A stretch of DNA of 64,000 nt from Paragordius varius (lineage: Eukaryota; Animalia; Nematomorpha). A program made the position numbers and the translations under genes. Under the pieces are notes generated by a model. That model saw nothing but the letters and a program-made list of their open reading frames with translations, was not told the origin of the DNA and made no database searches. Location of the stretch: the NCBI GenBank assembly GCA_964247055.1, contig OZ176053.1, positions 5,146,001-5,210,000 on the forward strand, written 5' to 3'. Below, piece after piece: positions 19,375-56,559 of this stretch (position 1 is its first letter; each line of letters begins with the position of its first letter).

Positions 19375-22300
19375 ATGTCGGAAACTTATCCAAGAATATC
19401 CATATTCCCCTCTCATATTGCGCTGTTATGTACCCATGACGTAGAGGTGTTAGCTCAAAAAAATAATCTAGCATTTGTGGAAATGTTAGAAATTTATTCA
19501 GTGATTGAATTAAATAGTAAACATTGCTTTAACCTTAGCTCACATACGCGATTACAATGGTAACGCTCATGCAATTAATAATATGTATGTAAAATTTAAC
19601 GAAATGAAAAATCAAAATGTACAGCCTTTGATTGCCAGAAAACTATTAAATGAATCTGTATCCAAATACAACTTATATCAAAAATCTGCGCTGGATTATA
19701 ATTATAACATCGAAAATAAAGAATTTAGTATCCCTCTTGGAAATATAAACAGTTTTGTTCAAATAATTTTTTAGAATCTTTGTTTAATATAAATTTCCCT
19801 CTTAGTGCTCCGTGGTTTGAACAATATAAACAAACATTTTTTAATGTTATGGTTTGTAGTGACCACGAATTTTTGCGACATTACCTTGCTTGTAAATTAT
19901 TGATATAATATTTATAAATTTAACCCTTTTTATAATCCACACTTTAATGCTTTATCGTTATTTTAATTTTGTTAAAAATTTCTAAATTTATGAAATAGAG
20001 ACATATATATTTGCGGATATCTATTATAATCATTTGCGTGATTTTTAATTTATTATATACAGTACATATATTAGTTGATAAAAATTTGACATAAAAATTA
20101 AATGAGTTAAAATACTTTGCATTATATATAATTTTGAAAGTTGAATTTAAATCCCGAAAAATTAGGTCTGTTTGTTGTTAGTTGCAACAGTCAGGATCCG
20201 TTACGAGATTTGGAAAATCTTATTCAACAACAACGAGAACATCAAGGGTTTCGGTCTCAAGTTCCACCCTTTACCAATACTAATTCACTTTCAGGTAAAC
20301 TTTATCAAATGTTTTTAAACAAATCTAATCTTTTTTTACCTTTTGAATTTTTATTTTATGCAAAAAGTATCAACGTTTATTATTGTTAACGAAAATAAAT
20401 AAGTTTATGCTATATAATATCTATGGTAAATAACTATTGAACTTAGTATGTTATGCGGAAATTTATTGTTATATTGTTTTACAATTTGGAAAGCAGGTAA
20501 ATTTGTCAAAGTCCTATATAATTTTGTATTTGTTATATTTACATAAAAATTGAACCATTAACTTTATTTATTATATCAATTTAGTTACTTTTAATTTTAT
20601 AATTACAAAAATCTTTTTCATTCAGTGTCTGCATCACACGTGGGAACTGGACATAAATGGTTTTGTCAAAGTGTTTTTCATTTCCATGTCTTATTATATG
20701 ATCCATCTGAGTGTGAGGAACAGCGGTAAGTAACAATTTTTTCGACGTATTTTAAAAAGATTGTTTGATATTTATCTAATTACGGTATAATCGATTGCAA
20801 TACATAAATTCTTGGGATATAAAATTTGCATGGCTTTTATCTCAAATAAAAGTAGCGATTTTGTTTGTTATATACAACGTCCAGCAAGTAAAAATTAGAT
20901 TTTAGGCATTCTTTATTTATTAATACCCATTTTTAAAGCATTTTTTTGTTAAGAAAATATTTTATGCCTTTAAATCTTACAAATTTAGCCATAAGCGCAT
21001 CTGGCTTCTTATTTGTTTAATATTTTCATTGCTTTCTCCAAAATTTTTGTTATTAAAATATTTGATTTTATGTAAAATAAAATTTCTTAATTAAATTATG
21101 ATAATATAAATAAATAAAAGCGGTATAATTATATTGCATTATCTATATAGAGCCCTGGGATTGTACGAAAATATGAAGAATATGTATGGTTCACATGCCT
21201 GCCACTTTTTACGCTTGAATGATACCGATTCGAATCTCTCGGTTAATTTTTCATTTTTTTTTCATTTTTTTAAAAATTTAAATAACAACATAAAAATATA
21301 GATATATTAATTTTATGATATGAAATGTTAAATTTAGACATCAATGAGAACTGATGAACCCTTACTCCCAACCCTTAACGGAGAACTTCCAATACAACTA
21401 AATTCCCTCCAAGATGCTTTGAAAGAAGGTGGTATTTTACTTCTACATTAGATTTTGTTGTAATTTTATAACCCAAATTTCCAAATTTTTTTAGGTGACA
21501 TCTTTCGGCTTCAATTTACATAATAACAAAATATTTACATTTTATTTGCACATATCCAATCCTTAATTATATTTGATGAATTTTGATAAAAATCCATTTT
21601 TTAAATCTATAAATGTAATAAATATATAAAACATCCCAAAAATCCTTAACTTTTCATAGATGCTGATTATTTAATATTTTATGACACATAGTTATTTAAT
21701 AAATGGGTAGTTAAATATAATTTATATGCTATCAATTTTATAATTATTAGGTAAATTGAAAAAGTTATTTGCTAATTATCTTTATTTATTTATTACAGAT
21801 AATACCGATGGAAGTCACCCATTAGATCAGTTAGCCCAGACACAAAATTTGTCCAACGTAAAATTATTTACAAATACATTAATCTCTTTTTTAGTTTATG
21901 TTTTACCACATTAGACATAATTAATATAATGATATGAAACTTTGACGTGTTTTATATACAGTAAATCATGAAAATTAATAACAAATAATATAAAATAAAT
22001 CTAGATGACATTTTAATTTTATATTAAAATAGCTTCAACAATATCATGTCGTCAAGATTTATTATAATTATTTGATATTAATTTTCCTTATTTCTTTATC
22101 ATAAATTGTATAAAATATATTTTAGATATAGAACCAAATAAATTTTAATAATCTCAAAATATTTTATTATTGATAGCCAACGCCTTACATGGAAGACACA
22201 TCCTCCCAACCCTCTTTAAGTCCAGGCCTCCTTAAATATAACGGTAAATAAATCTTAAGAGTATATAATAAACATTTAAACCAGAATTTTATAAATTAGC

Positions 22301-25300
22301 CCTTTTTTTCATAAATATTTTAGTTTGATCTAAATTCACTTTTGTATTTACAACTTTTAATACAGGCCAACAATTTGTGTTTTCTGTATCTTTATATGCT
22401 TTTAAATGCACAACCATTTGATTTGTATATAAATTCTTCATTTCTTCTAACAATTTTGAATATTACACCATATATGTATTAAATGAAATTCTAAAAAAAG
22501 TTGAGTAAATTTCTTTACTGTTTACCATTAACATATTTGATATGTTTACTAAGCAGAGTATATAATAACATGTATGTTTACCAAGGATAATAAATAGAAG
22601 CAATTATGGTGTTATATATGCGATAATTTATAAATACCATTTACACCTCAAATTCCCCCTCGAACAATTCAAATTCATCCCAAAAATAAGTTATTTTGTT
22701 TCAGATCAATATAACTCATCATTAACATAAATTAGTTTTCTTTGGCATAGTCCATTATTTTTGATTATAATTTTAATAAAGAAAATTTTATTTTTTTTTA
22801 AAAAATTATAAAGAAATATAGAGAATTTTTAATGCTTAAAAACACATAATTTATTTTAGGGTGAGAGTAAATTTGAGCTGTAAATGGTATATATCACATA
22901 TTATAAATTATAATATTAAACTAAACAAAACTAATTCTAAAAATAATAATGATAACATACAAACTATAGATGAAAATTTAAATTTATTATCGGCCGGGAA
23001 TCAAGCCGCAATGTCGGGTCTCGTTAAGGATTTTTGTGTTAAAGGACTTATTCCTTGGGCTGAACGGCATATGCGGTTATGGAATGAACAAGTTTATATC
23101 AATCTCTATTGTCTCTTTATTTTGTCTTAAACACGAAACACACAAATTAAATATTTTACAAAAAGTCAATCAGTGCTTTGAGTTAAATATTGTTAAATAT
23201 CATTGGTGGCGATGAAATCATTTTTATCATAAAATATGAAAAAAATCAGCGAAAAACCCTAAAAGCGTGTACGTTTTTCTTTTATTCTTTTTAGTGATAT
23301 GAAATTTACTTAAAACTATTTAAATTTAGACAAAAAAATGAATTATCCAATTTCCGCTGTGATAAAAAGGCAAAAAAATATTATAAAATTTTAAAAAATT
23401 CATACTGCCACAACAGTATAACATTAATTTATTTTTTTATAAAGATACCTTTTTACAAAAATGTCCGCACAAAAGTTCGATAAAAATCCTATATACATAA
23501 TATTATATATATTGAAAGATTCAATCTCGTCGAGGTCTCCTATCTAAAAGTATTATATCAGCAACGAAAAAATGGTTTGGAGTCAATTTGGGTGGTGGCA
23601 CTTCGAATGCAACTTTAAATGCGCCTCCACCCTCAGGAATATCTCATCAGCCTGTTATGGTATCGTTGAATAAACCGACACATGCATTAAAGACTATAGC
23701 GAATAAAAATAATTCAATACTAACTTTAAATAGCAACCAAAATCAAAATTATCAACCCTTAAACACTAGTAATTCTTCTATGATGTCTAAATCGGCTACC
23801 CTATCTTCGTTAGGTAGAAAGAGCTTTTTATAGATGTTTGTATAATTTAGAATTTACTCCATAATATATATGATATAAGTTGGGTTATATTTGTTCTATG
23901 TTTTATTTATAAATATAAATCTGGCACTGTTTTCATATAAAATTAAGGTAGAGTCAAAAACTTTATATAGTTTTATTAAAAAATAAAAAACATGGACATA
24001 ATAATATAACCTTTTTAACAATTATATATTTATACTTTGGTAATGGTAAAAACAGTATACTCTATAAGACAATTAATATACAAATTTATGGGCTCGTTTA
24101 ACTTTAATTAATAATGAGCAATGTAGTTATGATTTTTGATTATTCGCCATGTGATATATATTTTTTATTCTTGGATTAACTTTAATATATAACGCAATGT
24201 AAATTATAATTTTAGATTATTTGCCATCTTATCTTTATATTTTTTATAATAAATTAGGTAATGTTGGAATGAAATCACTATCCTCATCATCATCTTCTAC
24301 TAACACAATGCATAGTAGTTTAAGTACAACATCCGTTTTGTAAGTTGTATTTTTATATATAATTAGTAAAGTTTATTTTTCCTCATAAAGAATTAAACCT
24401 TTAATGATAGTTGATGATATAATAATAATACATTTTCTCGAAATGGAAAGTTCATTTGCATGAATATAATTTATGTTTTTATTTTGTTGTTTTTTTGGTA
24501 AGGATGATAGTATATAATATATATAAACCTTAATGCTTGTTGATTTAATAAAAAAAGAGTCGAAAACAAAATTATTTTATGTTACCCTCTTAGAAAATCA
24601 TTTACAGTTAATATTGAGAATTATACAGTATCCTTTAAACGATCCCCTATTTAATCGTTCAAATTTACATATATAGCTCTCATAATTAGTAAACATTCTA
24701 AAAAAGATAATATTTAATCTCCATAATATTACAATATTTTAAGGTATAATCAAGATTCGATTGAATTGCAATCCCGTCAATTGGCTGATTTATGTTTTTT
24801 GTTTCAATGTTATTCTCCAGCCTACCAATTATATCATAGCGTTAAAAAAGACTTTCAATCTGATCAAGCTTGGATTTATTATGCAGGCGCTATCGTATGA
24901 TATGCATCCAAATTTTATTTTGCTAGTTTTTGTTATTTAATGATGCCAGATATCAACAGTAAAGAGAATTATTTTTGTTGCAAAAAAGCAAAAAATAAGC
25001 CAATATTTTTTCGTGATTGTTTATGGCTATTTGGCAATATTTGATTAAAAACTAGCAATGCATTTTTATTACTGTATAATTAGGGTTTAAACTCACTGAC
25101 CGCTTGATTATGTATGCGGTTACATATGTTTATAAGAGTCATCATTACCACAAATGTAAAAATATGCTGCAATCAAATTAGATCTAATTTTTTAACATAT
25201 TTTTTAACAATTACTTGATAATGAAAGCTATGTAAAATCAGTAATAATTAAATTTATTTAAGACATGAATTTTTGATACTTCTAGTAATTTTTGCCAAAA

Positions 25301-28300
25301 TCAAAAATTTTAACAATAATACTTGGTAAATTTTTATACCATTATTTTATATACGTGATAATATGTAGGCATTTTTAACCAGTTAAACCCGACACCCTAA
25401 TTAATATATTTATCAACAAATTAATATACATTATTTAAATTTTGATTTCGATTTTTTTACTCAATAGGAAATGGCTGGTGTTACATCTTTTCTTATGAAC
25501 ACACCCCTCAATCAATATCCCCATCATTATATAGAATCAGCTATTAATACTTACCTCAATGTTTGCAAGTTCGAATTTTTTTATATGTTTTCAGTAAATT
25601 TAATACATTTTTTTTCAAACAAGATTAATCTTTTCATTATATATTGATCATTTTAGTTTACCGATATTTGCCATACGGTCAACATTAATTAGTACAGAGA
25701 TATTGAAATGGTTTGGATTATATACCCAGTCTGCATTACAATACCTTAAACTTACCTCAGAGGATTCTGATTTGAGAAGCGCTTTGTTTTTAGAACAATC
25801 GGCCTTGTGTTTCCTTAAGGTTTGATTTATTTCATAAGTTTTATCTTAACTGAATGTAAGTTAAATAATTATCATCTGTATACTTTATAATTTGGGTTTA
25901 TAGGGATAACTTTTTTTAAAAAATATCAACCCATAAAAAATATTTTATGATACTTAAAATCACAAACTATTTATGAATTTTTAGTTAATAAAATTGTCAC
26001 AAGTTATACATTTTGAATAATAGGATTAAAATATAACCAATACCTATTATATTGACAACATTTTAAATTTGATTAACCTATTTAATTTAGGTCAATTCAT
26101 CTGTAAATTTTCCCTTAAAAATAATTGAACAAGAAAATTCCAATGTATTAGAAGAAAAAAACAACCAATTATTGCCCAATGCAAAATTTTATACGGGGGA
26201 TAATGTTTCGACTAATTTCGGTGCTTCGATGAGTAAAGTGAAACCATACACTTCAATCGGAAGTTTGATAAGGAAATATGCATTTTACATGGTTTTGGCT
26301 GGAAATAAATATTTGAAAATAGCGGATGAAAATATACCTTCTGCCATGGTTTTGCAAACACCATTTACCAACCATAATAATAATAACCCGGTCATAACCA
26401 CCCCTAACCATATACATTCATCTCTTAAGTAATTTTAATTTTGCATTAAAAACTGGTCATAAATCTTGTCTTAATCATAGAAATAAATTTTAATTCGTAC
26501 ACACAGAAAACATTAAAGTTATAAAACAAATCGTAAAAAATAATAGACAAATATATTTTTAAGTATTTTATGTTTCTAAATGGGAATGTATGGTAATCTC
26601 CCCAATTATATTTCATAATATTAATCATTTAGGGTTTTATAATCGAGTATGTTTTTTTTGATTAACAAATTATTTGTTTTTAACTTTTTATGAAATGATT
26701 TATATGTTAATTTGTTTTGTTTATTTTTACGATGCTTGAAAAATATTCACATTTTTTAATTTTACCAAAGTATTTAATCAATAACAATAAGATATATAAA
26801 TTGGGTAAATAATAATCTCTTTAACTCTTTGCTTATCATACCATTTAAAATAATAAACTTTTTTTTGTTTTGAAGATTAGACTCTATAATTCTTGGGTTT
26901 TTGATAACTATTTATGCCCTAATATTTATTTTTCCTTTTTCAAAGTAATAACTATTTACTTTTATAAATGCATTCATAGCCAGTCAATCTAACCCATCAA
27001 TTTCAATTTCTTATTTTATATATAATTTTAAATGATATACTTATTTTAATTTACGGTATATTTTAGTATGTGTCTCTCCTTTAAACGACATGGCATACGT
27101 TGTTACAATTTAGCTAATCAAGTTTACAATATATTACCACAATTATGTGAAACATCTTTGGTTATTTCCAGTGATTTAAGGGACAGAAATTTGCACCATT
27201 CCAATTTTTATAGCAGCAGTAATAATGATATAATTAATGTTGAAAAACTGGGCTCATTTTCCCCTTACAAAGGCAATGAATGGAAAAGTGCCTGTGAACA
27301 TGTGCAGTTTACCTTAGCGAAACATTACAGATCCCTCTATCATTTGCTTTTGGCAAATGGCGTTCATAAAAGGTTTATATATATATATGTTTTTATCTTT
27401 TTTTCCTTTATGGTTAAATTGAATGTACTAGCATGTATCAGGCGATCAAAAAATTATACGAGGAATATATTTAATTTAATTTTTCTTATTAACTTATTTA
27501 AATAGCTTTCAATTTGTTTTTATCATATAGGGCCACAATATGTTTAAACGAATCACATTACCATTTATCGAATCTATTCACCCCATCTTTGAGCACACTG
27601 TACGACTGTAACATGTTATTTAAAATTTCTCAATCTACTACTCAAAACAACTCAAAAACACCATTTAACTATCACAAAAACATAAATAATTTAGACATTT
27701 ATTTGAATCTGTTGGGCTCAAATGTTAAAAACTTTGACAAACTTGGCCATCAAGATAACCAATTTATCATTGATGATAATAAATCTAACCGTGAAGGAAC
27801 TAATATGGCCATTCATGTCTCAACAAATCAAACGGCTAATCAAAATATACAAAATCACATCAAATATCTCAAAGAATTGATATCATTATTTACAGTTTTA
27901 TTTTTTTTATTTATAAATTCAAAAATTAGCGTTTACAAAATTTTTAATGTTTAAATGGATAATTGAACTGTTTTCTACAAAATATAACATTTGCGTGACT
28001 AAAAGAGGACTGTTATAAACCTAAAATTTTAACAGAATCATCGTTTAGTCGAAACTAATCAAAAATCCATTAAAATAAATTTTGAGGAAAATGACTTTTT
28101 TTATATATATAATATCTCACATCTACATAGGATTATCAACAATTAAAAAATCCGAATTTCCGTTTATCTTTACCCTTGCCTCTCTTTTTGTCACAAGCCA
28201 TTGAAGTTAAATTAGCCGATTATGATATTGAAAAACAAGCAAATACGTTTCGGCAATCGAAAGAAAACTACCATTTTGATCCAATGTTTCATTCCCACAC

Positions 28301-31300
28301 ATTTTATGGTATAAAGCGTAAATGATTAATTTTAAATGGAATATATATCTATAATCAGCTAGTGTATGGATTGATCTGGGATTAAAAACGGAACCTATTT
28401 TTGCGAAACAATTTTGGAACGAAAAATTCCCAACGCGACCCCAAAAAATAATATCTTCAATTATATTCTATTTTTTTATAAAATGTAAGCCTTATTTTAT
28501 ATTTTATTTAAATTATGGTAATATCTTTGTTAGTTTGCAGAAAAATAGCAGCACACAACAAAGTTTTATAGTTTAAGATTTAAATTTTTATAATATTTAA
28601 CCATAAAAATAAAGGTTATATGTAAGTTTAAAATGTTTAAGAGGTGTCAAAAAACAATGGCGGAACCTTAAATAGTTTTGGCGACAGATTTTTTGCAATC
28701 AAAACCATTTGGGTGAACCGGAATTAAAGACAAAAAAATGGAATTAAGAATGATTCCGATCCTAATCTTTAATATTAACAATAAATTTTATATAATATTT
28801 CAACAAAATTAAAAATTTATTTTTATGTTAATATGCAGATAGCTTGCAATTTTGTTATGCCAACATTTTACACCATTTGCACCGACAAAACACCCGAAAT
28901 TGTGATAAAAATTATCCACCTCATATTCCCAAAAATATCCTTAGAGCATGGACAAATCACATACATAATAATGCCACATACAATGATGAATATACCTCTG
29001 TCTTCCATAATGGTATATATTGATTTTGGCTTTTTAAAACGCCAAATATGTAGAATTTTGTAAAATATAACTTTTTTTTCAATAAATAAAGTAAATAAAC
29101 ACCTATGGGTGTCCGAAACACGTCCGGTTTTCAATAACAGTGGATACACCTCCTTCCATATATTCTTAAATGATAAAAAAATATATGCGATATCAACCAC
29201 ATGACCTTTTATTAATAATACATGAAAACTATTAAATTAACAATCATTAATATTATTTTAAATATGTTGGAAAAAATGATAAAATTATTTAAATTTTTTA
29301 TTATTTTTCTCTCATCTGGATTCCATAATCTTGAACCATTTTTTAGTTTTGGAAGATTTTTTAATTTAAAGCAATTATATCTTAAAAATTAGTAGATCTC
29401 CTTCAAAATTGAAAGTGTATGATCTTTATTTTATGAAGTTGTTTACATTAAAAAGCTTATCATGGGGGTGGGGGAGGGTAGTTATTATGGGTGTGTCTGT
29501 TATGCATGTTTTTATAAAATTTCATATTTTTTATACTGTGCAGAACCATTTGTTGTTGAAATTCCCGTGCTAAATACTGCCAAAATACCATTAGTATTAA
29601 CTGGAATAGAACTTGTTGGTTTTTATACAAAGAAAGAATCAACATTTACCGCCATAAATGACCATATATTGAGTTTTATATCTAATAATCATCAAAATAT
29701 ATCATCATCCAAACATCATTTAAGTACATCCACATCGAAAACAACACCTAAAGATGGATATGAATCGAAGCTAAATACATCGTTATGGGCTCATATACCA
29801 AACCGTATAGGGTTTGATACAGAAAATTCAGGTTAAATATTGTAAATTAAGAAATATATGTAATCTTTTTAATCAATATGTAATTGGTTATATATAATTT
29901 TTGGCTATAAAAGATATTCCGAGATAACTCTAAACATATATATAAATGAGTTATAAATTAAGCTAATTTACAATAAAACATATTTGTTGTAAAACTTTAT
30001 TGTATAATAAAAAATTACAATATAGGTTGAGATATATTTTGATCAATTGGGTCATACATTAATAGGCAAACTTTTTATATGGAATTTATTTGCAATACAA
30101 TCATTATTCTTAGTTAAGTTTTTGTTTTTTTATTTGTTTTATTTTAATGAATCCATATGATAATTTTACGTAACATCGTTTAATATATATGCATCTTTAT
30201 ATATAATTGATTAATATGGGTAGAAAAACTTAATTAACATTCAAAAATGAATATATTTTCGCATTCTTTATTCTTTTATTTTAAATGTGTTTTAATATAA
30301 TTTTTTTACACAGAGAGCTTCCTTAGTCCTGATAATCATAATGTGTACACTAGTATTGAAAGAGAACAATTGTTTAAGGAGCACCATTTCTACAATGAAT
30401 ACATGTCACCTTTTAAGAGTATTTACGATTTTTATGAAAATACAAATGAACCTAGTCAAAAGATGCATTTTCACAAGATTTTATCAGAATATTCAGACTG
30501 CAAAATACTTGGAGTAATATATTTGTTTTTACATATATTTTAATGGTTGCGTATTTCACATTAGAGTTGCACAATTCGTAACATAGGAGAGTGTATGGAA
30601 AAAAAGAAAGGAAAAAATTGTATATTCAACATTTTGTTGTTTTCTCCATACACTACTGTGTTGCAAATTGTTCAACTATAATTTGAAATAAGCAACCATT
30701 AAAATGCAGAAGACTTTATTACAAAAATTTTAAATTTGAGATATTGTTTTTTTGTGATTGTTCGCTTTAGGAGGCTATTGAATTGGATTTAACCAATACC
30801 GATTTGTGTATACCACCCCAGCAAGTTTCACTAGTAAAAAATTTAACTTGTTTCTTTGTTTTGTATTTTATTTATAATCATTTTTTATAATACTACACTA
30901 CCATCATAATATTATAATGTTTTTGTGATTAATTAGTTTATGACTATAAAGTTTCTTTATTATGGTACTTATTTAATAAATTTTAATCGGCAAAGTTAAC
31001 CCTTCAGGCGGATAATTAAAATATGCCTGGTAAAAAATCAAATTATGCTACTAAATCTTTTTAATCACCAAATTTATTTGTAACCGATTATGTCTAAGAT
31101 ATATTTTAAATATTATAACTATTTGAAATAATATTCAAATACATAAATTTTTTTTCAAAATGTGTTGTTATTTCCAACAGTATTTTGTTTTTCATTATAT
31201 GTTTGAAGAAAGTTAATTAAATATTTGTTAAATAGCTAATTAATAAATATATACCATTTCTTTTTTCCATATCCATTAAAATATTGTTGGATGTTAATTA

Positions 31301-34300
31301 TTTCATTTTTACATACCTACACTAGATTAAGTTAAGCATTAAAGCAAATCAAGTCGGATGGTTTCGAATCGATGGTTTACGCTATGAAATTGTTTTCCCG
31401 TTCACCAATTCATCTGCAACGGCTCATTTAGATACTCCCATCACTCATCTCAACAGTGGACAAATTATGCCAATGCCGGCCAATAGTTCATTAAATTCTT
31501 TAGGTATTCTAAAAATATGTTTTTTTAAATATGTCAACCCATATTTTCTAAACCTTATTTTATAAATATAAATGATCGTTTTTATTGAAAATATAAGAGA
31601 GTTGTAAATTGAAATATGTCTTTTTTAATAAGCCAACCATATTTTCTAAACCTTATTTTTTAAATATAAATAAATGATCGTTTTTGTTTGAAAAAATTAA
31701 GAATACAGTTGTAAATTGGTAATGTATATATTATATAATATTTCAAGGGTAAAAAAGTGTAGCTGTCTTTTTGAAAATATTTGTCTTTCATATTTTTGAT
31801 GTATACATATCAATAACAATAGGCCCCCCTGCCCCCATTTTGAAATTTTATTATTAAAACAACACTTTTCATAATTATTATCTTGCACTTTCCCGATTTT
31901 AAATAGTTACTTTTTGGGAGGCATTAAAAATTTTGTACGTTTTTCACATAACTTAAGGATGAGACATGACGATAGGTTAAAAACATTTGCCCTTTTTAAT
32001 ATTTGTGTAATTATATTTTTTCAAATTAACGATTTTTTAGTTAAAATGGTCCACTATGATAATAAAAAGCTATGTAGTATTCCCACCTAATTTAAGTTAT
32101 CGAGAGGGGATGTACATAATATGCATATGGTATAAATAAATATTTTTATAGCAAAATTTTTAATATAATTTTTATTTAGTGTCTTTTTCTCAGCCATTTT
32201 GGTGTCAAGGACACAGATTAAACCATAGCAACCAGCAGAAAAAATGCATGACATATTCGTTGGATAAAAGATTGCAATTTTGTGTTAAACCATCTTTGCC
32301 CCTTATAACAGTAATATATTTTTACTTATACGTACGGTTTAACACTTAGATTGACAATAATTTTTAAGAAAATCTTGTTATTTTAAATCATATTTTCCTA
32401 TTAAACTTTAGACAGTCATGTATCCTTTATTTTATCATAAGTTTATTTTCTTTCGTTAACTGGGTACACATATTTATTAAAGAATGGAAAAAACAAGAGC
32501 TCTATGGTATTAACAGTATCATATTCATCAAAAAAGTATAAGAATTACCATATCTTGTTTTTTATTCCATTATTTACCAAATATTTATACCCATTTAACG
32601 AAAAAAAAAATAAATTTTTGATAAAATAAAGGATACATGACTGTATAATAAATTAGGCACCTATCTTTTTGTTTATAAATTTTGTATTGTATATATGATA
32701 TTAACAATTTCCAATTTACAAATTTTTATATGTAATAAATGATCTCTTTGAAAAATGCAGGCTAAAATAAACCCCATACCATTTGTCATGTATGATGGAC
32801 AATTCCTTCCCAAACTTGATAGTAGCCTTGCTATACAAGCCCTTCAATCAATTCTACCATTTAGTGGCGTAGGAACACAAGACACTCAAACACCTTTGTA
32901 TAATATGATGATTGTATCAAACAATACTCATGCACACATTATTAATCACAACAATATATTATACTCTAGTGATAATAATTTTGATATGTTATACCATATC
33001 CCTATCCCGCCTGAGGAAATTAACACGGCGACGACTAGCATTAATAATACGACCACTACCAAAGTTGTTTCTACGATTTCTCCTTTAAACATTGGTACTG
33101 CTGTAACTAAAAATGTTGGCACAAATCTATTCCAAAAATGGTTACCTTTAGGTTTGCACAATGATAAAAGGTGTCGTACCACTTATTCAAAACATACGGA
33201 CAACATTGCTAATGATGCAAACATAAACACTGAAAAACGAAGTAAAATTCTCCGATTGGTGTAATATTTGTGTAGATAAATTCGATTTATTTGATGATAA
33301 AACAATAAACGGTAAAAAATTGTTTTTATTTACATGTTGTGGTTAAAATTTTTATTTAAATATTAATTTGGATTTCTATCATACTATTTCTTGGTTATTT
33401 TCCAATTATAGTTTTTTGGATTTTTATAACTTGTTATTTGGCTATCTCACATATTTTTTTTTGTTTAGATATGGATGTGATATCACATTCAGAACAAAAT
33501 CTTATGTGCAATATAACCATTTTTATTTATTCCTACACTGATAACATGAATGAATTATGTGACGAAAATGGTGAAACAAAAGACATTCTACCTATAAAGT
33601 ATCAATTAATACATATATTTGTATGAAAGATAAAACTATCGTAATTATGTTCTTATCGTCAAACTCCGACATTCTTTAAAAAAAATTAATATTATTCCAT
33701 AATAGTTTTAGAGCTTACACCTTACCGATTCGAGTCGAATCTCACCCATCTCTTAAATTAAGTACACGCATTTTGCTTAAAACATTAAAGCTGCATGACC
33801 CTATACCATCACAAATCACTGAAGCATCCGATAATATAGCAGCACAAATGGCATTTGACTTATTGATCGATTTAACGAATCTCACCAAAGTTTATCATGG
33901 ATTTGATTTTACTGATATATTTATTTTTAAAAGAATATGCTTTTTCTTTTTAAAGTTTTTAAAATTGATGATTATATAACGATATATAATGCTTTTGCCA
34001 AAATTTTAAACTGAAAATAATAAATTTACGTACATGCATTGAAATTAATTTTTCATAGGATACGGATGATAAAATTATGGTGATTCAAATCCATAAAATG
34101 GTACTTGTTAGTAGAACTCACACATTCAGTAGCACACAAAAACACTTGGGCCATTCAGGTTATCTTATGTAATAGAAATTATTGTTAAATATATATATCC
34201 ATCCAAAATAATTAAAAAAAGATAAATCTTATATGTAAGTTTAAATTTTCTACAGATTAATCATAGCTATAACGGGTTACCATTTATGTGGAAATTTTTA

Positions 34301-36714
34301 AATAAGTGGCGGAATACTATATTTATTTTACATTTAAATATTAAAAATTTGATTTAATATGTAGGAATCATAGAAATAAAGACCAATGAATCTTTACGCT
34401 TAATGTTGCATTCTCAAAATATTCCTTCTAAATCTTCAGAAAATGGTCCCATTGGTAATAACAATTTTTATAGATAGGCCTTTTTCACGAAAAATGACAT
34501 TTTTTTATTTTTTAACTTAACTAAATAGAATTATATTAATAATAAAATTTATCTTTTTTCTGGACAAAATAATTTTTAAATATATTTTAATTCGACTCTT
34601 TTTGGTGCTTTTTGGCACTTTTATGCCGACCAATATTTTGAATGAGTTTTAAAGTAAAAATTATTTTTGCATTTTTTTTCCATTCGCCGTGTAATCACAA
34701 ATTTATTTTTTTTCAAATAATAAATTACTCATAACTTAGTATCCGACATACTATGTTTTGGCTCATCATCAAATTACACACCTTTTAATCATTGCGCTCC
34801 CAGTGATAATTTTAATCAATCAGATGGCAAAGAATCAAAAATATATGAACCACTGTACAATATTATGCAAAAAGATTGGAGAAAACTTTCTGTTATAGAT
34901 AATGCATCCAAGCAACGTACCTCACTATATGCTTTCTGGACGGTAAGAATTAATTTGTTAGGAGGCATCTAAATGCAAAAAAGTGTCTTTTTTTACATTA
35001 TAATATTTTTTTTTATTTGCCTCAGAGTTTGATCATTGATGAAAAGGGGAACCGTGAAAACATACAGGGTATTCATACTATATCAAACATTCATGAAACG
35101 AATAGTTTGGAAAATGATAAAAGCCGGACAAAAGAAATGAATAATAATTATCAACATCTTGCCAGCGTTTTAATTTATAAACTTGAATATAAACCTATTG
35201 TTAATCAGGGCTGGGAAATGGTAAATCAAAAAAAGCGTATAATACCCATACAATTACACCTAACAAACATCGACCAAAATGATAATTTGCCCTTGTTAAT
35301 AACTGTAAAAACCAAAAATCACACAGGTATAGCAATAATATATAATTACTAGGTTTTATCCTTTTCTCAGTTTAAAGACATTTTCCCAGTCAATACAAAC
35401 ATGAGCTAATTTAAATGAAATGACTTAATTATAATACTAGACAACAAATTTTGACTTTTTTAAGTGCCATTTTTGTGAATTTAAAATTTATTTCATTTAA
35501 GAACAAAAATAGTATATCTAAAAAAGTTTAACACCTAAGAATTTTTTAATCAAGGTTTATCGAAAATTTTTGCCAATTTAACATTAAACTCGAAATTCAA
35601 AATTAAAAGTTAGGTATAGAGCCATGTATTTTATATCATTCGAATGAGTGCAAAAAACTGTATCTTTCGAATGGTAGTTGTTAAATGAATCTGATGTAAA
35701 AGTTATTTGGGTTCATATGGTCAAAATTTTTAACCCTGAAAAAAAACATTTTCACAGACAAACTAATTTAAAAATCATATAAATTATTTTATTATAATTA
35801 TTAGCGTTTACACTAGTATAAAATTTAAAAAAAACCTTTAAAAAGGTTTTGGTTTGCTTTTTTAATTCAAATTTTATATTTTACCTACTGGATGCTAAAA
35901 TGCATAGTTATAACTGTACATTTATTACATAATGGCTATAAAAGATTAAGAATACCTTAACATGAGCTATTTTCATTCATTAGTTTTAAAAATATATTAA
36001 TTTAAAAAACGCGCTCTCTTCGCGGGTTTGTCGCTTCCTATGTTTAATATTAACTATCGATATATAACATATTAGTATGCATTTTATAAAGTTTTCATTA
36101 CTCTTTCGAATGATATGGGCATCTGTTGTAAATTTTCAAATAAAAACATTTTTTAGTACAAAATTCTTAGGTTTAATTATTTTAGATTCAGAAAACGCTA
36201 AAAACTCGAGCGGCAGACAAATTTGTTCTATAGTAATTAATATATTGTTCATAATGACTGGAAAACCGTTTTGATTGACTGGAATATAGTTTTTATTGAT
36301 TAATAAAATTTAGTTGATTTTTTTATCCAATATTATACAGATTTCAATTATGCCTGGGTCGAAAAAACAGAGTATAACCAATTATTTTTAAGTTCTGGTC
36401 AAACAAAGCTTATTAACTTGTATGTATTGCCCTTTACATCTGCTACACAAACTTTGAAAATAAAATCTTTACAGATCATAGTTAAACAATGTAACCCTAA
36501 TATTCAATTAACAAAGAATGCTGCATCTGAATATATAAATAATAGCAATAATTACACATATATTGGTACCATATACGTCGATAATTACCATGTGAACATT
36601 CATACAAATATCCAACCATTATTGGAAACCGAAAATGCTTACTCAAACGAAAATGAGTTACAAAATGACTCTGTCGCGGAATTAATTAATGCCAATCTTA
36701 TCCAAATTATTTAA
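19375..36714 (+). CDS. TRAPPC8: Trafficking protein particle complex subunit 8 (Trs85), about 1,990-2,000 aa, 33 exons
   Basis: Exons: 19375-19516, 19539-19727 (or -19751), 19775-19891, 20166-20294, 20626-20725, 21151-21241, 21338-21431, 21799-21857, 22177-22243, 22970-23091, 23519-23813, 24258-24339, 24744-24894, 25468-25568, 25657-25819, 26091-26428, 27067-27372, 27531-27894, 28131-28308, 28839-29012, 29544-29831, 30314-30513, 30771-30833, 31326-31503, 32180-32310, 32761-33241, 33469-33598, 33706-33889, 34059-34158, 34365-34454, 34740-34942, 35026-35326, 36341-36714; phases chain without stops. Motifs: APWFEQY..SDHEFLRHYLAC, SATKKWF, QLADLCFLFQ, KKDFQSDQAW, LTSEDSDLRSALFLEQ, IRKYAFYMVLAG, QGHRLN, YAWVEKTEY. 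Exact N-terminus and a few insert-region boundaries are uncertain. Confidence 0.93.
22637..22887. mobile_element. MITE family B (TA-flanked) in TRAPPC8 intron 9
   Basis: TA|CCATTTACA...TGTAAATGG|TA with GAACAATTCAAATTCA(T/C)CC subunits. Confidence 0.75.
31535..31725. repeat. Two-copy tandem duplication, unit about 98 bp, in TRAPPC8 intron 24
   Basis: CCATATTTTCTAAACCTTATTTT...AAATGATCGTTTTT...GTTGTAAATTG is repeated. Confidence 0.8.
32413..32643. mobile_element. Tc1/mariner-type MITE (231 bp) in TRAPPC8 intron 25
   Basis: Perfect 25-bp TIR CAGTCATGTATCCTTTATTTTATCA / TGATAAAATAAAGGATACATGACTG; right flank TA, left flank GA. Confidence 0.8.
35435..36235. mobile_element. CMC (CACTA/Chapaev-like) non-autonomous element, degenerate copy, in the last TRAPPC8 intron
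   Basis: Ends TACTAGACAACAAATTT / AAATTTGTTCTATAGTA; collinear with 38324-40024 but lacks the TTAA insertion. Confidence 0.7.
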
Positions 36715-40800: not shown

Positions 40801-41222
40801 ATTTGTGAGGGCAAATCATAAGACCCACATTCATATTTAATGCATAAACTTTGTATTTCTTCATTTAAATGTGGCCTGTTCGTTTTACCAGATATGATCG
40901 AAAGAGCTAGTTTGAATTCGTTGTTAAATGCCCTTTTGCTAATCCCGCTTAACTTAAAAACGCTGTCCTATGGCAAATTAATAATTATAATGTTGTATTG
41001 ATCAATACAAAAAAATTACTTTATCAATTTTATAATTTTTCTTGCAAGCAACGACGCATATTGAAAGAAGTTCCAAAAATTTAGGTTGACATCCGTTAAT
41101 AAAATCGTTTTTGCATTTTATTAGCTTTTCATGTATATCAATTACACTCCTAAAATAATTTTTTTAATTAACTTATGATCTTGTTGAGGTAACTCTTTGA
41201 AAAGTTCTCCCAATTGTTCCAT
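37845..41222 (-). CDS. ORC6: Origin recognition complex subunit 6, 289 aa
   Basis: Exons complement(41173-41222, 41020-41149, 40792-40967, 40069-40152, 37845-38274) = 870 nt. Motifs DSVFKLSGISKRAF (cf. human AYLIKLSGLNKETY), IQSLCIKYEC, VISIVVAAK/SLEIPIN and C-terminal DYNMWKKSILEK (cf. DYEEWKRKILEN); intron positions parallel human ORC6 as recalled. Confidence 0.85.
38324..40024. mobile_element. CMC (CACTA/Chapaev3-like) non-autonomous element filling ORC6 intron 4
   Basis: TIRs CACTAGACAACAAATTT / AAATTTGTTGTCCAGTG; 3-bp TSD TTA (38321-38323 and 40025-40027). Confidence 0.85.
38736..39313 (+). mobile_element. piggyBac-like TTAA MITE (family C) nested in the CMC element
   Basis: TTAA|CACTTGGAT...ATCGAAGTG|TTAA; asymmetric subterminal inverted repeat TTCGATTCAAATTGGGGTA..ATACCCCAG. 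Confidence 0.88.
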
Positions 41223-41263
41223 TTACATTTAAATTTTAAATTAACGAGTGTTTGGTTTTCCAT
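41223..41263. promoter_or_regulatory. 41-bp spacer between the divergent ORC6 and BAP1 start codons (putative bidirectional promoter / overlapping 5' UTRs)
   Basis: ORC6 ATG at 41222 (-) and BAP1 ATG at 41264 (+). The ORC6 ATG is preceded by an in-frame stop. Confidence 0.7.
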
Positions 41264-44200
41264 ATGAGCAATCCAATTCAAAGTTGGCTTGAACTTGAAA
41301 GTGATCCAGGTTTGAAAAAAAATATATTTAGGTTTGTTTTCGTTACTTTTGCGGGAAATGGGTTTTTTATATATTAATCATTAGGTGTAAAAGGCGTTGA
41401 AGTCGAAGATGTTTATGATCTAAATGATAAATGGCACGCAAAGTATCTTATTTATTTAAATTGTAAATATTAATGAAAACTTTTAAGCCTAACATTCAAT
41501 AACACAAAAATTATATTAAGCTGTGTGTTTGCCAAATTATCCCTTTTTAACACATTCATTTATGAAATTTCACTTTTTTTCGTTATAAAAATTTAATATG
41601 CTTTAAATAGTATTCTTTCTCATAGACACTTAAGGTAAGAACCAGTTTTTCTTAATAAGGAAGTATTTTGCGATGGTTATAAATGATAAAGAAAATTGAT
41701 TATATTTAAAACTCAATCAGGATTCGACACTTCATACAGATAATTTTATATAAAAATTAAGTTTAAATTTCTCAATTTAATTTAATTCTCATATATAAAA
41801 TTTTTTGACCCTTAGCAATTTAATAAGCACATGTCCTTTTGGTAAACCTATACATAATAACTAACTAACTACATTTAAAGCGTCATACCGCCTATTTTTA
41901 ACCGATCAAAATACATCATTAGTTATGTAATTCCATGAGCTTTGCCGTGATCCAAAATAGATTAAGTCTTTACATATCCAAATCAATATATATTGAATAC
42001 AAATTTCTAATACCTATTGGTAACATTGAAATCATCCTTTTTTCATTAAATTGTAAAATTGCTTTGAAAAGGCCATATTGTATTTTAAACTGTAAAAAAC
42101 AGAAATCGGTTTTAAACCGGCAGATTTGAATATTAGTTTTGCATACAAGTGGTTTTATTCTACATATAATCTATAAAATGGAGATTATTTTAAAGCAAGA
42201 AACTGAAATAATTGGTATGTATCTTAAAATTAATCAAGAACTGGTTTTGGTATTTTTGGTTCTTGTTTCAAGCCAAAATAATATTTATCAATGCTTATTA
42301 TTACCAAAATATAGGACCATAAATTATATATTTTATTTTTAATGAGGCGTTAATCAGCTTGATAAAATTTGCTTTTTTATATATATTTTACGTCAAACTA
42401 CAAGTTAATCACATATTATTACGCTTAGGTTTTCAAATTAATTTTATTTTATAGACATACTTATGGATTTATATTTCTGTTCAAATGGATTGATGAAAAA
42501 CCTAAACGCCGAGGCACGGCTGATACCTTGGAATCAACGAATTATTTAACTGATAGTGATAGAATCAAAAAAATGTTTTATGCTAAACAAGTTCTTTTTC
42601 ATTTTTTCTAAGATAAAACTTTAGATTATACCAAATTCATGTGCAACGCATTCCCTTCTCAGTATCGTAATGAACGTCAATAATTTAGATGTTGGACCCA
42701 ATTTGTTGAAACTCAAAAATTTGACGCAAAACCTAAATTCCGAGGTATCGTACACGCTTTTAACTATTTGCATCCAATGACGCGTTACCATAAATGAAAT
42801 TTTAAATCTAATAATTCAGCATTATAAATATTTATTTGGTTAACGATATATACAGTCACACTTAAAAGATTGCGAATCTTTATATTAAAAAATTAAGGAA
42901 GTGAATACAGCTCTAAGAAAAAATATAATGTTTAGTTGGATATAAAATTATACGTATTTTTGTAGCATTTTTTTCAAAAACATTTAGGCATATTCAAATT
43001 GATTATTTTAATGAATTTTGCCGATCATAGTTAAGTCGCTTTTAATTGGCCCTAAACTTTAAAATTTATATGAAACTATAAGACATGATTTGTATTGATA
43101 TTCTCTAGTTTTTATTCACATTATTTGAATATTAACAAAGCGTGAATCTTTAAAAAAATTGTTTTACTTATTTTTTATTCTCTATATGCTTTTATAACAA
43201 AGAGATAAATCGTTATTGATACAATTAAATATAATTATAAATTTTTGTTTCTATGAATTTTTTTAGTCCCATTTTAATTTCTCTCTTTTGTCAGAATTTT
43301 TTTTTAAGTAATCCTTTATTATCGCCAAAAACATTACCTCAAGGTCAGATAAAATTTCCTTTATTTTAGAGAAATTTAGGTCAGTTGCCTACGTAATTTT
43401 ACTCTGGCTTTTTCTATCTCTTTTGAAAATTTAAAAAATTAAACAATTAGTTAATATTATAACCATAAAATGATATTTAAAATTTTAAGTGGATTAAACT
43501 TTGTAGATTATTTTTAACCGAAATCCCATCCTCTTACGGCTTTATATTAGCTTATATTTTATAAAACGATTTTGGCAAATTATTTGAAGTAGAAATAAAT
43601 AGCATGGAATTTATAATTTTGAGCCCAAACATAACCTGTTTGGGTGTATCAAAGCCGTTTCTTTTTGTCAAATTCTGTTTTTGAATCTGATTCAAAAACT
43701 TTTTGGGTAACCTTCTAATTATATATATTAATTATATTAAATTAAAATCAAAGAGGAAATAATTTGATTTATTTCATAAATAAAAATTAAAGGTATATAA
43801 AATAGGCTCAAATTCCTTAGCGAGTTAAAGCCTTTTTGTGGAAATTAAAATGCATATGGTATCTCATAGTACTTAACCATTTTTTTAACGCATAAATCAA
43901 TGAGAAAAGATAATACTGTTTATCACAAATTAAATTTTTTGATAAATATATATTATTTTTGCGCTATAATAGGACAAAGGATATGCCATAGCAAATATAC
44001 CAGAACTAGCACATGCTCATCATAAATTTGCAAAGTATCATTTTTTTCTACCGTTTTTTTACATAGATCATTTATTAATAATAATATTTGTTCTAAAGTT
44101 TAAAAATGGAAATCTATTATATTATACGTGTGTCAAAATATAACATTATAAAGCGTAATATTCAATTCATTGATCTTCATCCTTTTTATATAATTTTTAA

Positions 44201-47200
44201 TATATATAAACACATTAGCCATCCACTTTTAAATATATAAAATAAGGTTATAATTGCCAAAATATATATGTTAAAACAAGGTAAATGATCCTTATCTTTT
44301 AAGGCTAAAAGGCATTCCATTTAATACATTTGTTGAAAAAAAAGCGACGGACAAATATTATTATTTGGGACAAATAGTATAACTACAAAAGTTTGTATCT
44401 AAGATATGCAGTTTTTATTTTTAAATCGCGAAACAAAATTATTGATTGTAATTATAGCGTAGTTATTGCAGCTCTAAGACTACCTTTAAATTTAAAAATT
44501 GATTTTTGCTCTTAACATATATTTTTTTATCATTTAATTGGATGCAATATGACTTTATTTCTGCTGTTGACTAAAATAACCATTTCGATATTGTATTTGA
44601 AAGAATATTTTAACAACGTTTGTTATTTATCAATTTACAACTTTATGCCTAAGCAGAAATATTTTTGTCTCACCATTGTCAGAAAAGTGGCCAAAGAATT
44701 GTGATGATTCTAATTTGTTTGCATCTCAATTAGGATCATCTTAAACATTTCAGCTGGTGTAGTTGCCTCTTTCATTAACAAATTTAAAATATTAAACCTG
44801 CTTGCTTGGCTAATTATTTAGATGCGTCAAACGAAAATATATGTTTGATTGATACTAAACAATGTTATGGATAGTTTCGCGCTATACTCACTAAATATAG
44901 CTAGTATTTAGCATAAGTTGTTTATCTATAAATAACATATGGTATTCTTAGGGAATATCATTCTTTTGAATTTTCACTTAATAACAACTATCAAATAATT
45001 ATTTTTGACATAATATTTTATTATAACTTTTATAAAATAGAAAAGATAAAAATTTTAGCCTCAACGTTCCAAAATCTACCACAGTCCAGGAAAAAAGGAA
45101 TACTGATTCAATAACCAACATTGATGTTGTTGAAATGGATACAAAAGTAATATTTATGCCAGAAATATATTTAATTTGTTTTATACAAATATTAAAAATT
45201 TACTAATATGGAATATAGGATTATATAGACACTGATAATATCAAAAATATTACAAGGAGCCATACTCCCACACAACTTAATGCAAACGTTACCACTTCAC
45301 CAGCCAAACAATCATTAGGTTAAATATATTATTACTGATAAACATATAATTTTTGTATGAAAAACATATGACTACTTAATAGAAAAAAATACATGTAGTT
45401 TAGATTTAGGTCTTTTAGTTTTGTTACCGTCAAACATACTGTTGTGCGGGTCATTATTGTACAAAGACGATTTCTATGTGTAATTCGTCATGTGCTATTT
45501 TTTCTGACACTTTTTATAATGACAAATTTTAAATGACAATTTAATCTGTTTTTACCACAAAAAATAATTAAATATATTTTAGTTGGCATTAATTAAATTA
45601 TTTAAATTTTGGTTATAATGCAGGAAACAGAAATTTGGAAGAAGATTGTTTTCACTATGTTAGCTTTATACCGATTGACGGTGAACTTTATGAGTTGGAT
45701 GGTTTAAAGCCATATCCGATTTCTCACGGTAATTTACCATTTTTCAAAATATATTGTTATACAAAATTGTTTAAAACAAAATATTTAAACTTCTTTTTAC
45801 CACATATAGGCCCTTGGAATCCAAACGAAGAATGGACAGATAAGCTACGAAGAATTATTATTTCACGCATTTCCAATAAACCCATGTAAATATATTAAAT
45901 ACTATCCCATATATTAATCTATCCATTAAAAAGACCAAAAAATATTTTATTAAGTCATAAGTTCTTTCTTAAACTTTATCTGTTAATCCACCGTATTATT
46001 TTATTGTATTTGATTTTATCTAAAATAATCTTTCAAAATCGGTTATTATAAACTTATAATTATGGTCATAAAGCTACTAATTAATCCGCATATATATAAC
46101 TTAAATCAACATATATTATATTAGCATATCTCAAGTAAGTATTGAGAACATTAATTCATCCAATCTTACCTTATCACAAATGTCCATTTCTCCCATAAAA
46201 GCTACTCTAACCCAACAATCTTTAACTACTTTAAGTTCAAATTCTATCACCACCACGATTTCCAACGATAATTTATCCAACAATCCCATTAGTGTTTCCA
46301 ATGAAATCCGGTATAATTTAATGGTTGTGTGCAAGGAAAAACGTACCATACTCCGTAATATATTAATGGCTAAACGATCTCACCTATACTCTGCACTTCA
46401 AAGCCTACCCGTGGTTTATTATTGTTTCATTATAGTGTTTTATCATGTAAAGCCTTAAAGTATGAATTTATTTTCAATATAAAGGATGAGAATTTTTTAA
46501 ATCTTGAATATGAGTCTTTATATCTAACACTGTTCAAATATTTTAAACATCAAATAGTTAATTTACCCATTGTTAAGTTTTTCTTTTTAACAAATATACA
46601 ATATATTTTAATGGTGATTATATTTTTTGTAAACATTCAGAAAGTTTTTAAATAGATTTAACCTATTCTTTATAGCCAAAATTAAATATAATTAAGTGCA
46701 TCCATGTTTATACTTTTTTAGAATTCATGATATATTTTAGACTTTACGGACATTTGAAGATTTGTTTCAATTGATTGTGGCTGAAAATATGGAAAAAATG
46801 CGTAATGTTTTGCGAAAAACAAAGGTTTGTTTTTAATTTACTGTGAATTTACATTTAATATATAAATAAATCTTGTAGGAGCGAGTTTTTATGCAATCGT
46901 TTAAAACCAATATTCCAACCCGAGTCCGAAATAAATTTTATTCCCATAGTTCCATAAAGGTATAATTAAATTATATTTCATTAAATCATTGCGTTTTTCT
47001 GGATTATTTTTATTTTTCTTTAGATTTAAGTAATTGTTTTTATCATAATAGGAAATATTATCCACGATGTACGACATGCATACTGACATAATTAACACTC
47101 ATACTAATTTAAAAAAGGAAAATGAAAAATGGGATCGATACAAAGTAATGTATATTAATTGAAATTAAATATATTTTAAAAAGTTACAGCGCTTTGTACA

Positions 47201-47492
47201 AGATTAATTTTGATCAAATAATTTTGTTTGCGCTAATAAATTAGATTGAAAATTCCCGTCGCATTCATGAATATGGACCCTTTATACAGGCCTTTATTCA
47301 GGCTTTGGCCCGTCATAATATGCTTAAAGGGATAATAGAAAATCATTTGCCTAAAAGTTTGTAAAATTTGTTTTTTGTATTGTTTAACATAATATTTTTT
47401 ACGGAATATGTTTTTTTATTGTTGTTTTATTAGAATCGTCTCTTTACACAAGAAAGATTAGGAAAATGTCCTGCCGCCAAGTCAAACTGTGA
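41264..47492 (+). CDS. BAP1: BAP1/calypso-type ubiquitin C-terminal hydrolase, about 511 aa, 16 exons
   Basis: Exons 41264-41309, 41332-41361, 41385-41442, 42455-42590, 42625-42744, 43973-44034, 45059-45146, 45219-45318, 45624-45728, 45810-45885, 46125-46410, 46741-46824, 46879-46959, 47052-47144, 47245-47356, 47434-47492. Motifs [35 protein letters not shown] (catalytic Cys), FHYVSFIP (His), [10 protein letters not shown] (Asp), [32 protein letters not shown] and a basic C-terminus. Confidence 0.93.
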
Positions 47493-54604: not shown

Positions 54605-55996
54605 TTGAGTGGTTAAAAAACAAAAAGACAATTTGAGTTGTGATTTTAAAATATCTTAAAGTGTTTTTATATTCTTTTACTGTGAAAAGCCCGCTTCACA
54701 GAATTTTTTTTCTATCAATTAAATAAAAAAATCATTTCTTATATAAAAATTATCACATATTTAAAATTTTTATCGCGCAACCCTTTCGCCTTTATTTTAA
54801 TTAAACAACTCTATTAAAAAGGATACCAAAAATAAAGATTTACGGAGGCCACATCAAAAAAATAAAATATCATAATTCTTAACTTTTTAAATATAGTTTT
54901 AAATAATTAAGGATATTTTTGGATGAAGCATATAACTTTCACCAAAATATTGTATTTACCATGTTTTGGGAAAATTTTTATATTTTTCGAAGTGGAACAA
55001 GTACCACAACAATTTCATATGCAACTTGCAAGGCCCGAAACCAAAGGAACCATGAAAATCCTGAGACATTTGTCTAGCAGAATATATGGTTTCTAACCGG
55101 AACCGCAACCTGTTCCTGAAATTCTAACAGAAACCCCTTCCTGGATCCAACAAGGTTCGGCGACACATTTCAAATTCTGTAAAACCAGCCCGGTTCCGGT
55201 TCCATTAATGAAAATATCGATTTAATCGAAATGTTCAGCATCATCGAATTGCATAAAAAGTGTTATCATATCACATTACAAACACATTTTGAAAAATAAA
55301 AATCAACACCAAATATTTTTCAGGAATATTTATTTCATCAATATAAAACTGGCAAATATAATATAGTAATATATGGTAATATATTTAATTAACTTTTATT
55401 TGATTTTTTGGAATTAGCGATATTAAATCATATTATATCACTGTTTAATTCAATTTAAAATAGATTTTATTTAAATCTTTTACAAAACTCTTAACAAAAT
55501 TTAGTGTTATATGACACTTTTTTATATAAATACTTAACCCTGAGAACCTAATTTTAATCAACTTTCATAAAAGTTACGAATCTCAATATTTATCCGTTGA
55601 TAATATTAAAAAGGTAATGACTAAAAAAATAAATAAAATAGAAATTCAGAAGTTATGCAGGCCCTAAGCCTTAGAATATTAATCAATACAATATTATATA
55701 TAAATCTTATAGGGGAAGAATAATACCCCAAAAGGCTTAAGCTCGTTAGCAAATATAATAATGTTCAGAAATTAAAATTATCAAAACTGACAAAATTCCT
55801 TCTCACATTTAAATACTAAAAATTAAATTTAAATATATAACAATATTATTTTTAAAAAGTCATACCTGGATAATTTAGTTTATTTACTTTCATCATTTAT
55901 TTTATTTACCAAACATCAGCCAATTAATCAGCATAATCATTTGGCCTTGATTCAAAATTATTTTGTTGCTCATATTTTTTCGCTAACTTGATAATT

Positions 55997-56392
55997 ATGT
56001 CAGAAAACCATGAACAATCCAAAGCAGGTCATGGTGCAGCAGGTTTATTTTATATCTATATTAATAGTTAAAGTTGGAGGTATGCGGATTACGCAGCATG
56101 TGAATCCAAATCGTGAAAAACATGATAAGACTGAAGAAGTAGCCGAAGATATGAAAATGTAATATTCTTTTTATTTTAGAGCTCAGAAAGACAAGCATCT
56201 CGACATATCTGGATATCAATCTAAAGTAATGTTTATATCTAATTATAGGGTGATTTAGATTTTCCTACCGCAGCAGTTAAGGCATTCCATGATAAACCTC
56301 CACTTGCTAGCAAAGATTGTCCAAAAATTGATAAAAACACCTTTTTTGCTAAGAACTATCCGCTACAACAACCTCGTCAAATCAATCATTAA
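55997..56392 (+). CDS. DAP: Death-associated protein 1, 108 aa, 4 exons
   Basis: Exons 55997-56042, 56068-56158, 56180-56225, 56249-56392 (introns of 25, 21 and 23 nt) give MSENHEQSKAGHGAAVKVGGMRITQH...ISGYQSKGDLDFPTAAVKAFHDKP...LQQPRQINH*. Matches the DAP1 motifs KAGHPPAVKAGGMRI, GDKDFP.AA...H.KP and IQQPR. Missed by the ORF track. Confidence 0.93.
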
Positions 56393-56559
56393 ATTGTGCT
56401 AAAATTTATAAATAAAGTCATTAGCAATCTAATCAATTGATTTATTTTATTGATTATATCATAATAAATTTAATTAACAATATACGATGCATAATTTAAA
56501 ATGTTCATCTAGGCATCTAATTACTAAAAATTATTATATGATAAGTGATATTGCATAAT

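Follow-up and report, generated by a model that had tools for sequence, protein, structure and literature searches.

Clusters of very short introns near gene starts have been described from flatworms. In Opisthorchis felineus, microintrons (<75 nt, with modes of 37 and 90 nt) are clustered near the transcription start site beside a 3-kb intron peak; the study also took in Schistosoma mansoni, Echinococcus multilocularis and Macrostomum lignano, and its authors proposed intron definition (Ershov et al. 2019, PMC6530080). Animal introns shorter than 30 nt have been reported only for the Myxobolidae and Dicyema, in a comparison of 51 genomes whose text contains no mention of nematomorphs (Hadjez et al. 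2026, PMC13644364). The present analysis concerns introns of 21-25 nt at the 5' ends of four genes (TRAPPC8, ORC6, BAP1 and DAP1) in a stretch of 64,000 nucleotides from the hairworm Paragordius varius (GCA_964247055.1, contig OZ176053.1, positions 5,146,001 to 5,210,000), referred to as the window. Introns of similar length also occur in ciliates (Paramecium, Stentor), where retention leads to premature stops and mis-splicing becomes visible to nonsense-mediated decay. The ciliates differ from the window in that they are unicellular, all of their introns are tiny, and there is no positional class.

Eight such micro-introns were confirmed in the window (Table 1), each with the ends GT..TAG, a length of 21-25 nt (mode 23 nt) and an AT content of 68-91%; the GC content of the window is 24-32%. 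The first-pass annotation of this DNA had listed seven GT..TAG introns of 21-25 nt as necessary to restore conserved proteins. All seven were found, and the frame and homology across the junctions bear out that necessity; the eighth is intron 2 of TRAPPC8. A conserved reading frame or homology is restored by removal in 8/8 cases, and retention of any one of them leads to a stop codon after 1-22 codons. The micro-introns often lie in adjacent runs, including three in DAP1, two in BAP1 and two in TRAPPC8, and the four genes are otherwise intact. The class is separated from the other introns by a gap in size: the next lengths are 34 nt (BAP1 intron 4), 49 nt (a MIC10-like gene) and 52 nt (ORC6 intron 2), and then at least 72 nt. 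The non-micro introns, about 47 of the 55 in the window models, have lengths of 34-1794 nt.

The GT/AG ends, the restoration of the frame by removal, and the positions and phases common to introns of orthologues are those of U2-type GT-AG introns. The splice signals of both size classes are degenerate (GTW..TAG): the long introns start with GTAA, GTTT, GTAT or GTTA and mostly end in TAG, and the micro-introns have the same repertoire. Neither the extended 5' splice-site consensus of U12-type introns nor their conserved branch-site motif was found in any of the eight micro-introns. An A nucleotide lies 5-9 nt before the AG in all eight, which is the chance expectation at 68-91% AT.

A chance origin of the micro-introns is excluded, because at every point where the homology breaks a GT..AG in the proper length class is required, and because three junctions match introns of a related annotated genome in position and phase. 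The segments might also be something other than introns, such as assembly indels, decaying pseudogenes, somatically removed DNA or translational recoding sites, and no RNA shows their removal (the RNA-labelled runs gave no contig at DAP1). Such an origin is nevertheless very improbable, given the GT..TAG ends and the length of 21-25 nt in 8/8 segments, the orthologous intron positions in Gordionus montsenyensis and in human BAP1, and the otherwise intact state of the four genes. The DNA reads also speak against it at DAP1. A DNA-run contig covers 55831-56509 ungapped and contains all three DAP1 micro-introns with the same lengths and no indels; therefore, these micro-introns are not assembly indels, an error that the first-pass annotation had named as a possible refutation. 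The contig differs from the window by four single-nucleotide polymorphisms (SNPs), two in DAP1 intron 1 and two in exon 2, and neither exon SNP alters an amino acid in the spliced frame. The DAP1 micro-introns thus keep their lengths in a second haplotype or individual; the read check of DNA covered these introns only, three of the eight micro-introns.

Table 1. Features of the 64-kb window. Positions are counted from the first nucleotide of the window.
Feature	Position	Strand	Description
TRAPPC8 exon 1	19375..19516	+	ATG at 19375; Pfam TRAPPC-Trs85 profile positions 4-37; aligns to 14 homologues
TRAPPC8 intron 1	19517-19538	+	22 nt, phase 1; joins two reading frames
TRAPPC8 exon 2	19539..19751	+	tblastn with the G. 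montsenyensis homologue, 68% identity
TRAPPC8 intron 2	19752-19774	+	23 nt, phase 1; choice of the gene-model script; absent from the first-pass list
Rest of TRAPPC8	19775..36714	+	about 33 more introns, 83-859 nt; approximate model, 3' end uncertain
ORC6 exon 1	41173..41222	-	ATG at 41222; start of the full 289-aa model
ORC6 intron 1	41150-41172	-	23 nt, phase 2; reading frame restored
ORC6 exons 2-5	37845..41149	-	introns of 52, 639 and 1794 nt; exons match G. montsenyensis ORC6
BAP1 exon 1	41264..41309	+	ATG at 41264
BAP1 intron 1	41310-41331	+	22 nt, phase 1; matches human exon end c.37
BAP1 micro-exon	41332..41361	+	30 nt; human BAP1 exon 2 (c.38-67) likewise 30 nt
BAP1 intron 2	41362-41384	+	23 nt, phase 1; matches human exon end c.67
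BAP1 exon 3 onwards	41385..47360	+	gene-model script; Peptidase_C12 matches on exon pieces; 3' end uncertain
DAP1 complete gene	55997..56392	+	107 aa, four exons; ATG at 55997; gene-model script
DAP1 intron 1	56043-56067	+	25 nt, phase 1; starts 46 nt from the ATG
DAP1 intron 2	56159-56179	+	21 nt, phase 2; retention gives a stop after one codon
DAP1 intron 3	56226-56248	+	23 nt, phase 0
MIC10-like gene (control)	56560..57553	-	Pfam DUF543, E = 5e-20; gene-model script
U3 snoRNA gene	48795-49090	-	Rfam RF00012, 56 bits, full length; downstream of BAP1
MARVEL-domain gene	3680-4280	-	Pfam E = 6.5e-5; intron of about 294 nt; outside the positional test
125-codon open frame	12022-12396	-	His/Gly/Thr-rich; no Pfam match; could be a real low-complexity gene
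Open frame	50374-50574	+	resembles the C-terminal dimerisation part of hAT transposase (putative, without Pfam comparison)

The nearest TRAPPC8 homologue was found in G. montsenyensis (GCA_954871325.2), and the tail-to-tail arrangement of TRAPPC8 and ORC6 is conserved in this genome. The two hairworms are related but clearly diverged: in the first 780 residues of TRAPPC8 the identity is 36%. In TRAPPC8, intron 1 (22 nt) and intron 2 (23 nt) have the same codon and phase as G. montsenyensis introns of 40 and 232 nt, respectively; intron 1 of ORC6 (23 nt) corresponds in the same way to a 77-nt intron. A base-by-base check showed that ORC6 intron 2 also has its codon and phase in common with G. 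montsenyensis, and the exons on either side of introns 3 and 4 match. Across the junction of TRAPPC8 intron 1, 14 homologues align without a gap. For BAP1, the human exon ends c.37, c.67 and c.122, inferred from the splice-variant names c.37+1, c.67+1 and c.122+1, correspond to introns 1-3 of the window gene; therefore, these three introns are ancestral, and human exon 2 also has 30 nt. With its own 30-nt micro-exon, the BAP1 N-terminus of the window matches Pfam Peptidase_C12 with 49.3 bits over profile positions 1-53 ungapped; without the micro-exon the score is 23.4 bits. At a high intron penalty the script chose one 75-nt intron spanning the micro-exon; this model was rejected, since 26 bits are lost against Peptidase_C12. 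A search for DAP1 relatives with a 71-aa spliced DAP1 query gave no candidates, and the comparison of intron positions covers TRAPPC8, ORC6 and BAP1. These orthologous positions support the earlier proposal that ancestral introns have shrunk to a narrow size range around 23 nt.

The smallest introns seen at the G. montsenyensis loci have 40-47 nt, compared with 21-25 nt in the window. The 29 introns of G. montsenyensis TRAPPC8 measure 43, 40, 232 and 292 nt, and then at least 139 nt. The two shortest come first in this genome too, and the polarity is therefore older than the 23-nt size. The 43-nt intron, directly after ATG+G (L001, 3004-3046), is an extra one, which the window gene is without. 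The 3' splice site is AAG in 15 of the 29 G. montsenyensis TRAPPC8 introns, whereas it is mostly TAG in the window. Where the annotated exon 5 of G. montsenyensis runs unbroken, the window gene has a 331-nt intron (20295-20625); this difference is either intron gain or loss, or a read-through in the G. montsenyensis annotation. A hAT transposase gene is located between TRAPPC8 and ORC6 in G. montsenyensis (L002, 44442-45209), and BAP1 was not found within 1.4 kb of ORC6 there. In the window, the start codons of ORC6 and BAP1 stand head to head, 41 nt apart (41223-41263), and their common promoter region must therefore be extremely compact.

Within the genes, the micro-introns occupy the first positions. 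The intron lengths in order are 22, 23, 274, 331, 425 and 96 nt, and then 83-859 nt, in TRAPPC8; 22, 23, 1012, 34, 1228, 1006, 72, 305, 81, 239, 327, 227 and 100 nt in BAP1; 23, 52, 639 and 1794 nt in ORC6; and 25, 21 and 23 nt in DAP1. All eight micro-introns begin no more than 377 nt from the ATG, and there is no micro-intron among the roughly 47 later introns (Fisher p = 3e-8); a gene-wise permutation, in which the number of micro-introns per gene was held fixed, gave p = 5e-6 for their occurrence in first positions. The MIC10-like gene, used as a control, is intronless over its first 646 nt and then has a single 49-nt intron (56859-56907).

Most of what the first-pass annotation had said about this layout agrees with the present models. 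The confinement of tiny introns to gene 5' ends beside long introns was supported within the window, and no downstream intron is shorter than 34 nt. The statement that all of them lie within about 250 nt of the ATG is correct for the seven listed introns; TRAPPC8 intron 2, however, starts 377 nt from the ATG, and therefore the limit is about 380 nt instead of 250 nt. The downstream introns had also been described as laden with transposable elements (TEs), which is true only in part, as window-repeated sequence occurs in only 3 of the 33 downstream TRAPPC8 introns.

The micro-introns might also merely cluster without any positional rule, so that runs fall at the start by chance in four genes and detection is possibly biased to conserved N-termini and short genes. 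The sample is small, DAP1 gives three of the eight micro-introns in a gene of only 396 nt, and the weakly conserved downstream parts of TRAPPC8 lie beyond the homology check. An absence of any rule seems doubtful, however: the permutation p is still 6e-4 with adjacent micro-introns taken as one unit, the most conserved downstream exons of TRAPPC8 and BAP1 are bordered by introns of 72-1228 nt, and the same polarity exists in G. montsenyensis.

Several candidate introns and exons were rejected. The rest of TRAPPC8 was modelled by the gene-model script together with blastp and per-exon tblastn against the G. montsenyensis homologue. TRAPPC8 intron 2 could also be read as a 47-nt intron with an upstream donor, which keeps the frame but misses the position of the G. 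montsenyensis intron. A 19-nt ‘intron’ at 25711-25729, obtained in a lenient run of the script, is an artefact, and homology gives an 88-nt intron (25569-25656) in its place; further downstream ‘introns’ of 18-35 nt from lenient runs lie in non-conserved or spurious exons. The last BAP1 ‘exons’ of the script (48621-48937) are also spurious, as the U3 snoRNA gene is located there on the opposite strand.

The first-pass annotation had further proposed two splicing regimes, in which a mechanism near the cap or promoter would permit or drive the shrinkage of 5' introns to about 23 nt. One such mechanism might be U1 recruitment assisted by the cap-binding complex during early transcription; on this model, introns of this size would be unspliceable further downstream. 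The cap-binding complex aids the splicing of the cap-proximal intron. In the window, the 5' restriction is strict, and up to three consecutive micro-introns occur, from 46 nt after the ATG. A convergent 5' bias is also found in flatworms (PMC6530080). Two regimes are nevertheless unlikely, and this part of the earlier interpretation was not sustained. The splice signals are alike in both size classes. Second and third introns are tiny as well, at distances from the ATG of up to 377 nt, and the small size thus extends beyond the cap-proximal intron. Nearness to the start does not enforce shrinkage: BAP1 intron 3, of 1012 nt, begins 179 nt from the ATG. Short introns also occur further down: BAP1 intron 4 (42591-42624, 34 nt) lies 1.3 kb downstream of the ATG, and the 49-nt intron of the MIC10-like gene lies 0.65 kb downstream of its ATG. 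Moreover, G. montsenyensis has the same polarity with ordinary introns of 40-43 nt, and ciliates splice introns of such size at any position. In a variant of this idea, the minimum spliceable length would depend on the distance from the cap or promoter, and a co-transcriptional, promoter-proximal way of pairing splice sites would allow 5' introns to contract to about 23 nt, a feature that hairworms and flatworms would have acquired convergently; this variant is just as improbable. As a whole, the earlier interpretation is partly supported.

On the sequence evidence, it is very probable that the eight segments are true spliceosomal introns and have the minimum size of their lineage. The favoured explanation, which we consider fairly probable, is that U2-type introns at ancestral positions have shrunk to this minimum in a flatworm-like 5' layout, with one spliceosome. 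The segments would then be ordinary GT-AG introns of the U2 type, reduced in the hairworm lineage to the shortest length that its spliceosome still removes. They would form a discrete class of minimal introns, in adjacent runs at gene 5' ends, while later introns remain long, and both size classes would be handled by the same spliceosome. The tiny introns would most likely be recognised by splice-site pairing across the intron (intron definition); the exons flanked by long introns further down may be recognised across the exon. The polarity would reflect a limit on intron length that depends on position and is already present in G. montsenyensis, and the lower minimum would be new in the lineage of the window. 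From these patterns we infer the actual splicing, the mode of recognition and the cause of the polarity.

Several points weigh against this explanation. Intron definition alone leaves the 5' location of the tiny introns unexplained. Exclusion of TEs near promoters was considered as a cause of the polarity and rejected: the downstream TRAPPC8 introns are mostly non-repeat, and a high-copy repeat lies near the ATG of the MIC10-like gene. The downstream gene models, made by a crude script and homology, are approximate, and an unnoticed micro-intron is possible in their weakly conserved parts. Only four genes are informative, and DAP1 is too short for any of its introns to be non-5'. Finally, at a likeness of only 85%, three RNA-labelled runs carrying the same species label still yielded no contigs for 55800-57700, the stretch with DAP1 and the MIC10-like gene. 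The word share of the RNA-labelled runs with sampled window sequence was 0.00.

Comparison with the flatworm microintrons (PMC6530080) showed several similarities. In both cases, a discrete short class occurs beside long introns in the non-compact genome of a parasitic worm, neighbouring short introns cluster near the gene start, and they are under-annotated through the minimum intron lengths of software. The window introns are, however, shorter (21-25 nt versus modes of 37 and 90 nt, about 14 nt shorter) and belong to a hairworm-type ecdysozoan, whereas the microintrons of that study belong to Platyhelminthes. The flatworm microintrons are supported by RNA; those of the window are known from DNA alone. 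The splice sites of the flatworm microintrons are nearer to the consensus than those of other introns (PMC6530080), and the window has no such difference (n = 8).

The introns of the Myxobolidae and Dicyema japonicum (PMC13644364) are similar to those of the window in their length below 30 nt, the GT-AG ends with reduced motifs, the conserved positions between conserved exons and the short neighbours. Short introns (median 22-27 nt) are the norm throughout their compact genomes, whereas the micro-introns of the window are outnumbered by introns of 0.1-1.8 kb in a repeat-rich genome; 5' polarity was not reported for these animals (PMC13644364). The window agrees with the general eukaryotic rule of Bradnam and Korf (2008, PMC2518113) in that intron length depends on ordinal position; however, the direction is reversed, as first introns are the longest under that rule and the shortest here.

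The finding is therefore partly known: the 5'-clustered layout has already been published for flatworms (PMC6530080), and the size of about 23 nt and the hairworm lineage are new. No report of 5'-clustered micro-introns in hairworms was found in the literature, and the hairworm genome papers do not discuss introns. If the explanation is true, the hairworms would be the third animal group with introns below 30 nt. They would also provide the first example from a repeat-rich genome whose spliceosome has to remove kilobase introns as well, and the physical lower limit of splicing would be testable within one organism. The shortest-first polarity now appears in two unrelated phyla of parasitic worms, which points to a general rule on splice-site recognition near gene starts. 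For annotation, aligners and gene finders that require introns of at least about 20-40 nt will produce broken 5' ends for many hairworm genes. The low BUSCO score (71.6% in G. montsenyensis) and the claimed large-scale gene loss in Nematomorpha merit a recheck with micro-intron-aware tools.

Some further details were observed in the genes and repeats of the window. Two parts of the Pfam DAP profile, positions 9-34 and 63-98, are matched by exons 2 and 4 of DAP1. In the neighbouring MIC10-like gene, the MIC10 (DUF543) domain is joined to a long tail of amphipathic repeats, and the DNA run gives two haplotype contigs over the repeat part. At 57592-57700, the word depth of the DNA-run contig rises from about 300-700 to about 100,000, with many loose ends at 57635-57682; this points to a very high-copy repeat upstream of the MIC10-like ATG, at a distance of 40-150 nt. 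A single repeat family, whose copies contain related open frames, is found at 567-809, 8404-8640, 15806-16318 and neighbouring positions, and most of the sequence at 38-40 kb and 58-62 kb also recurs within the window.

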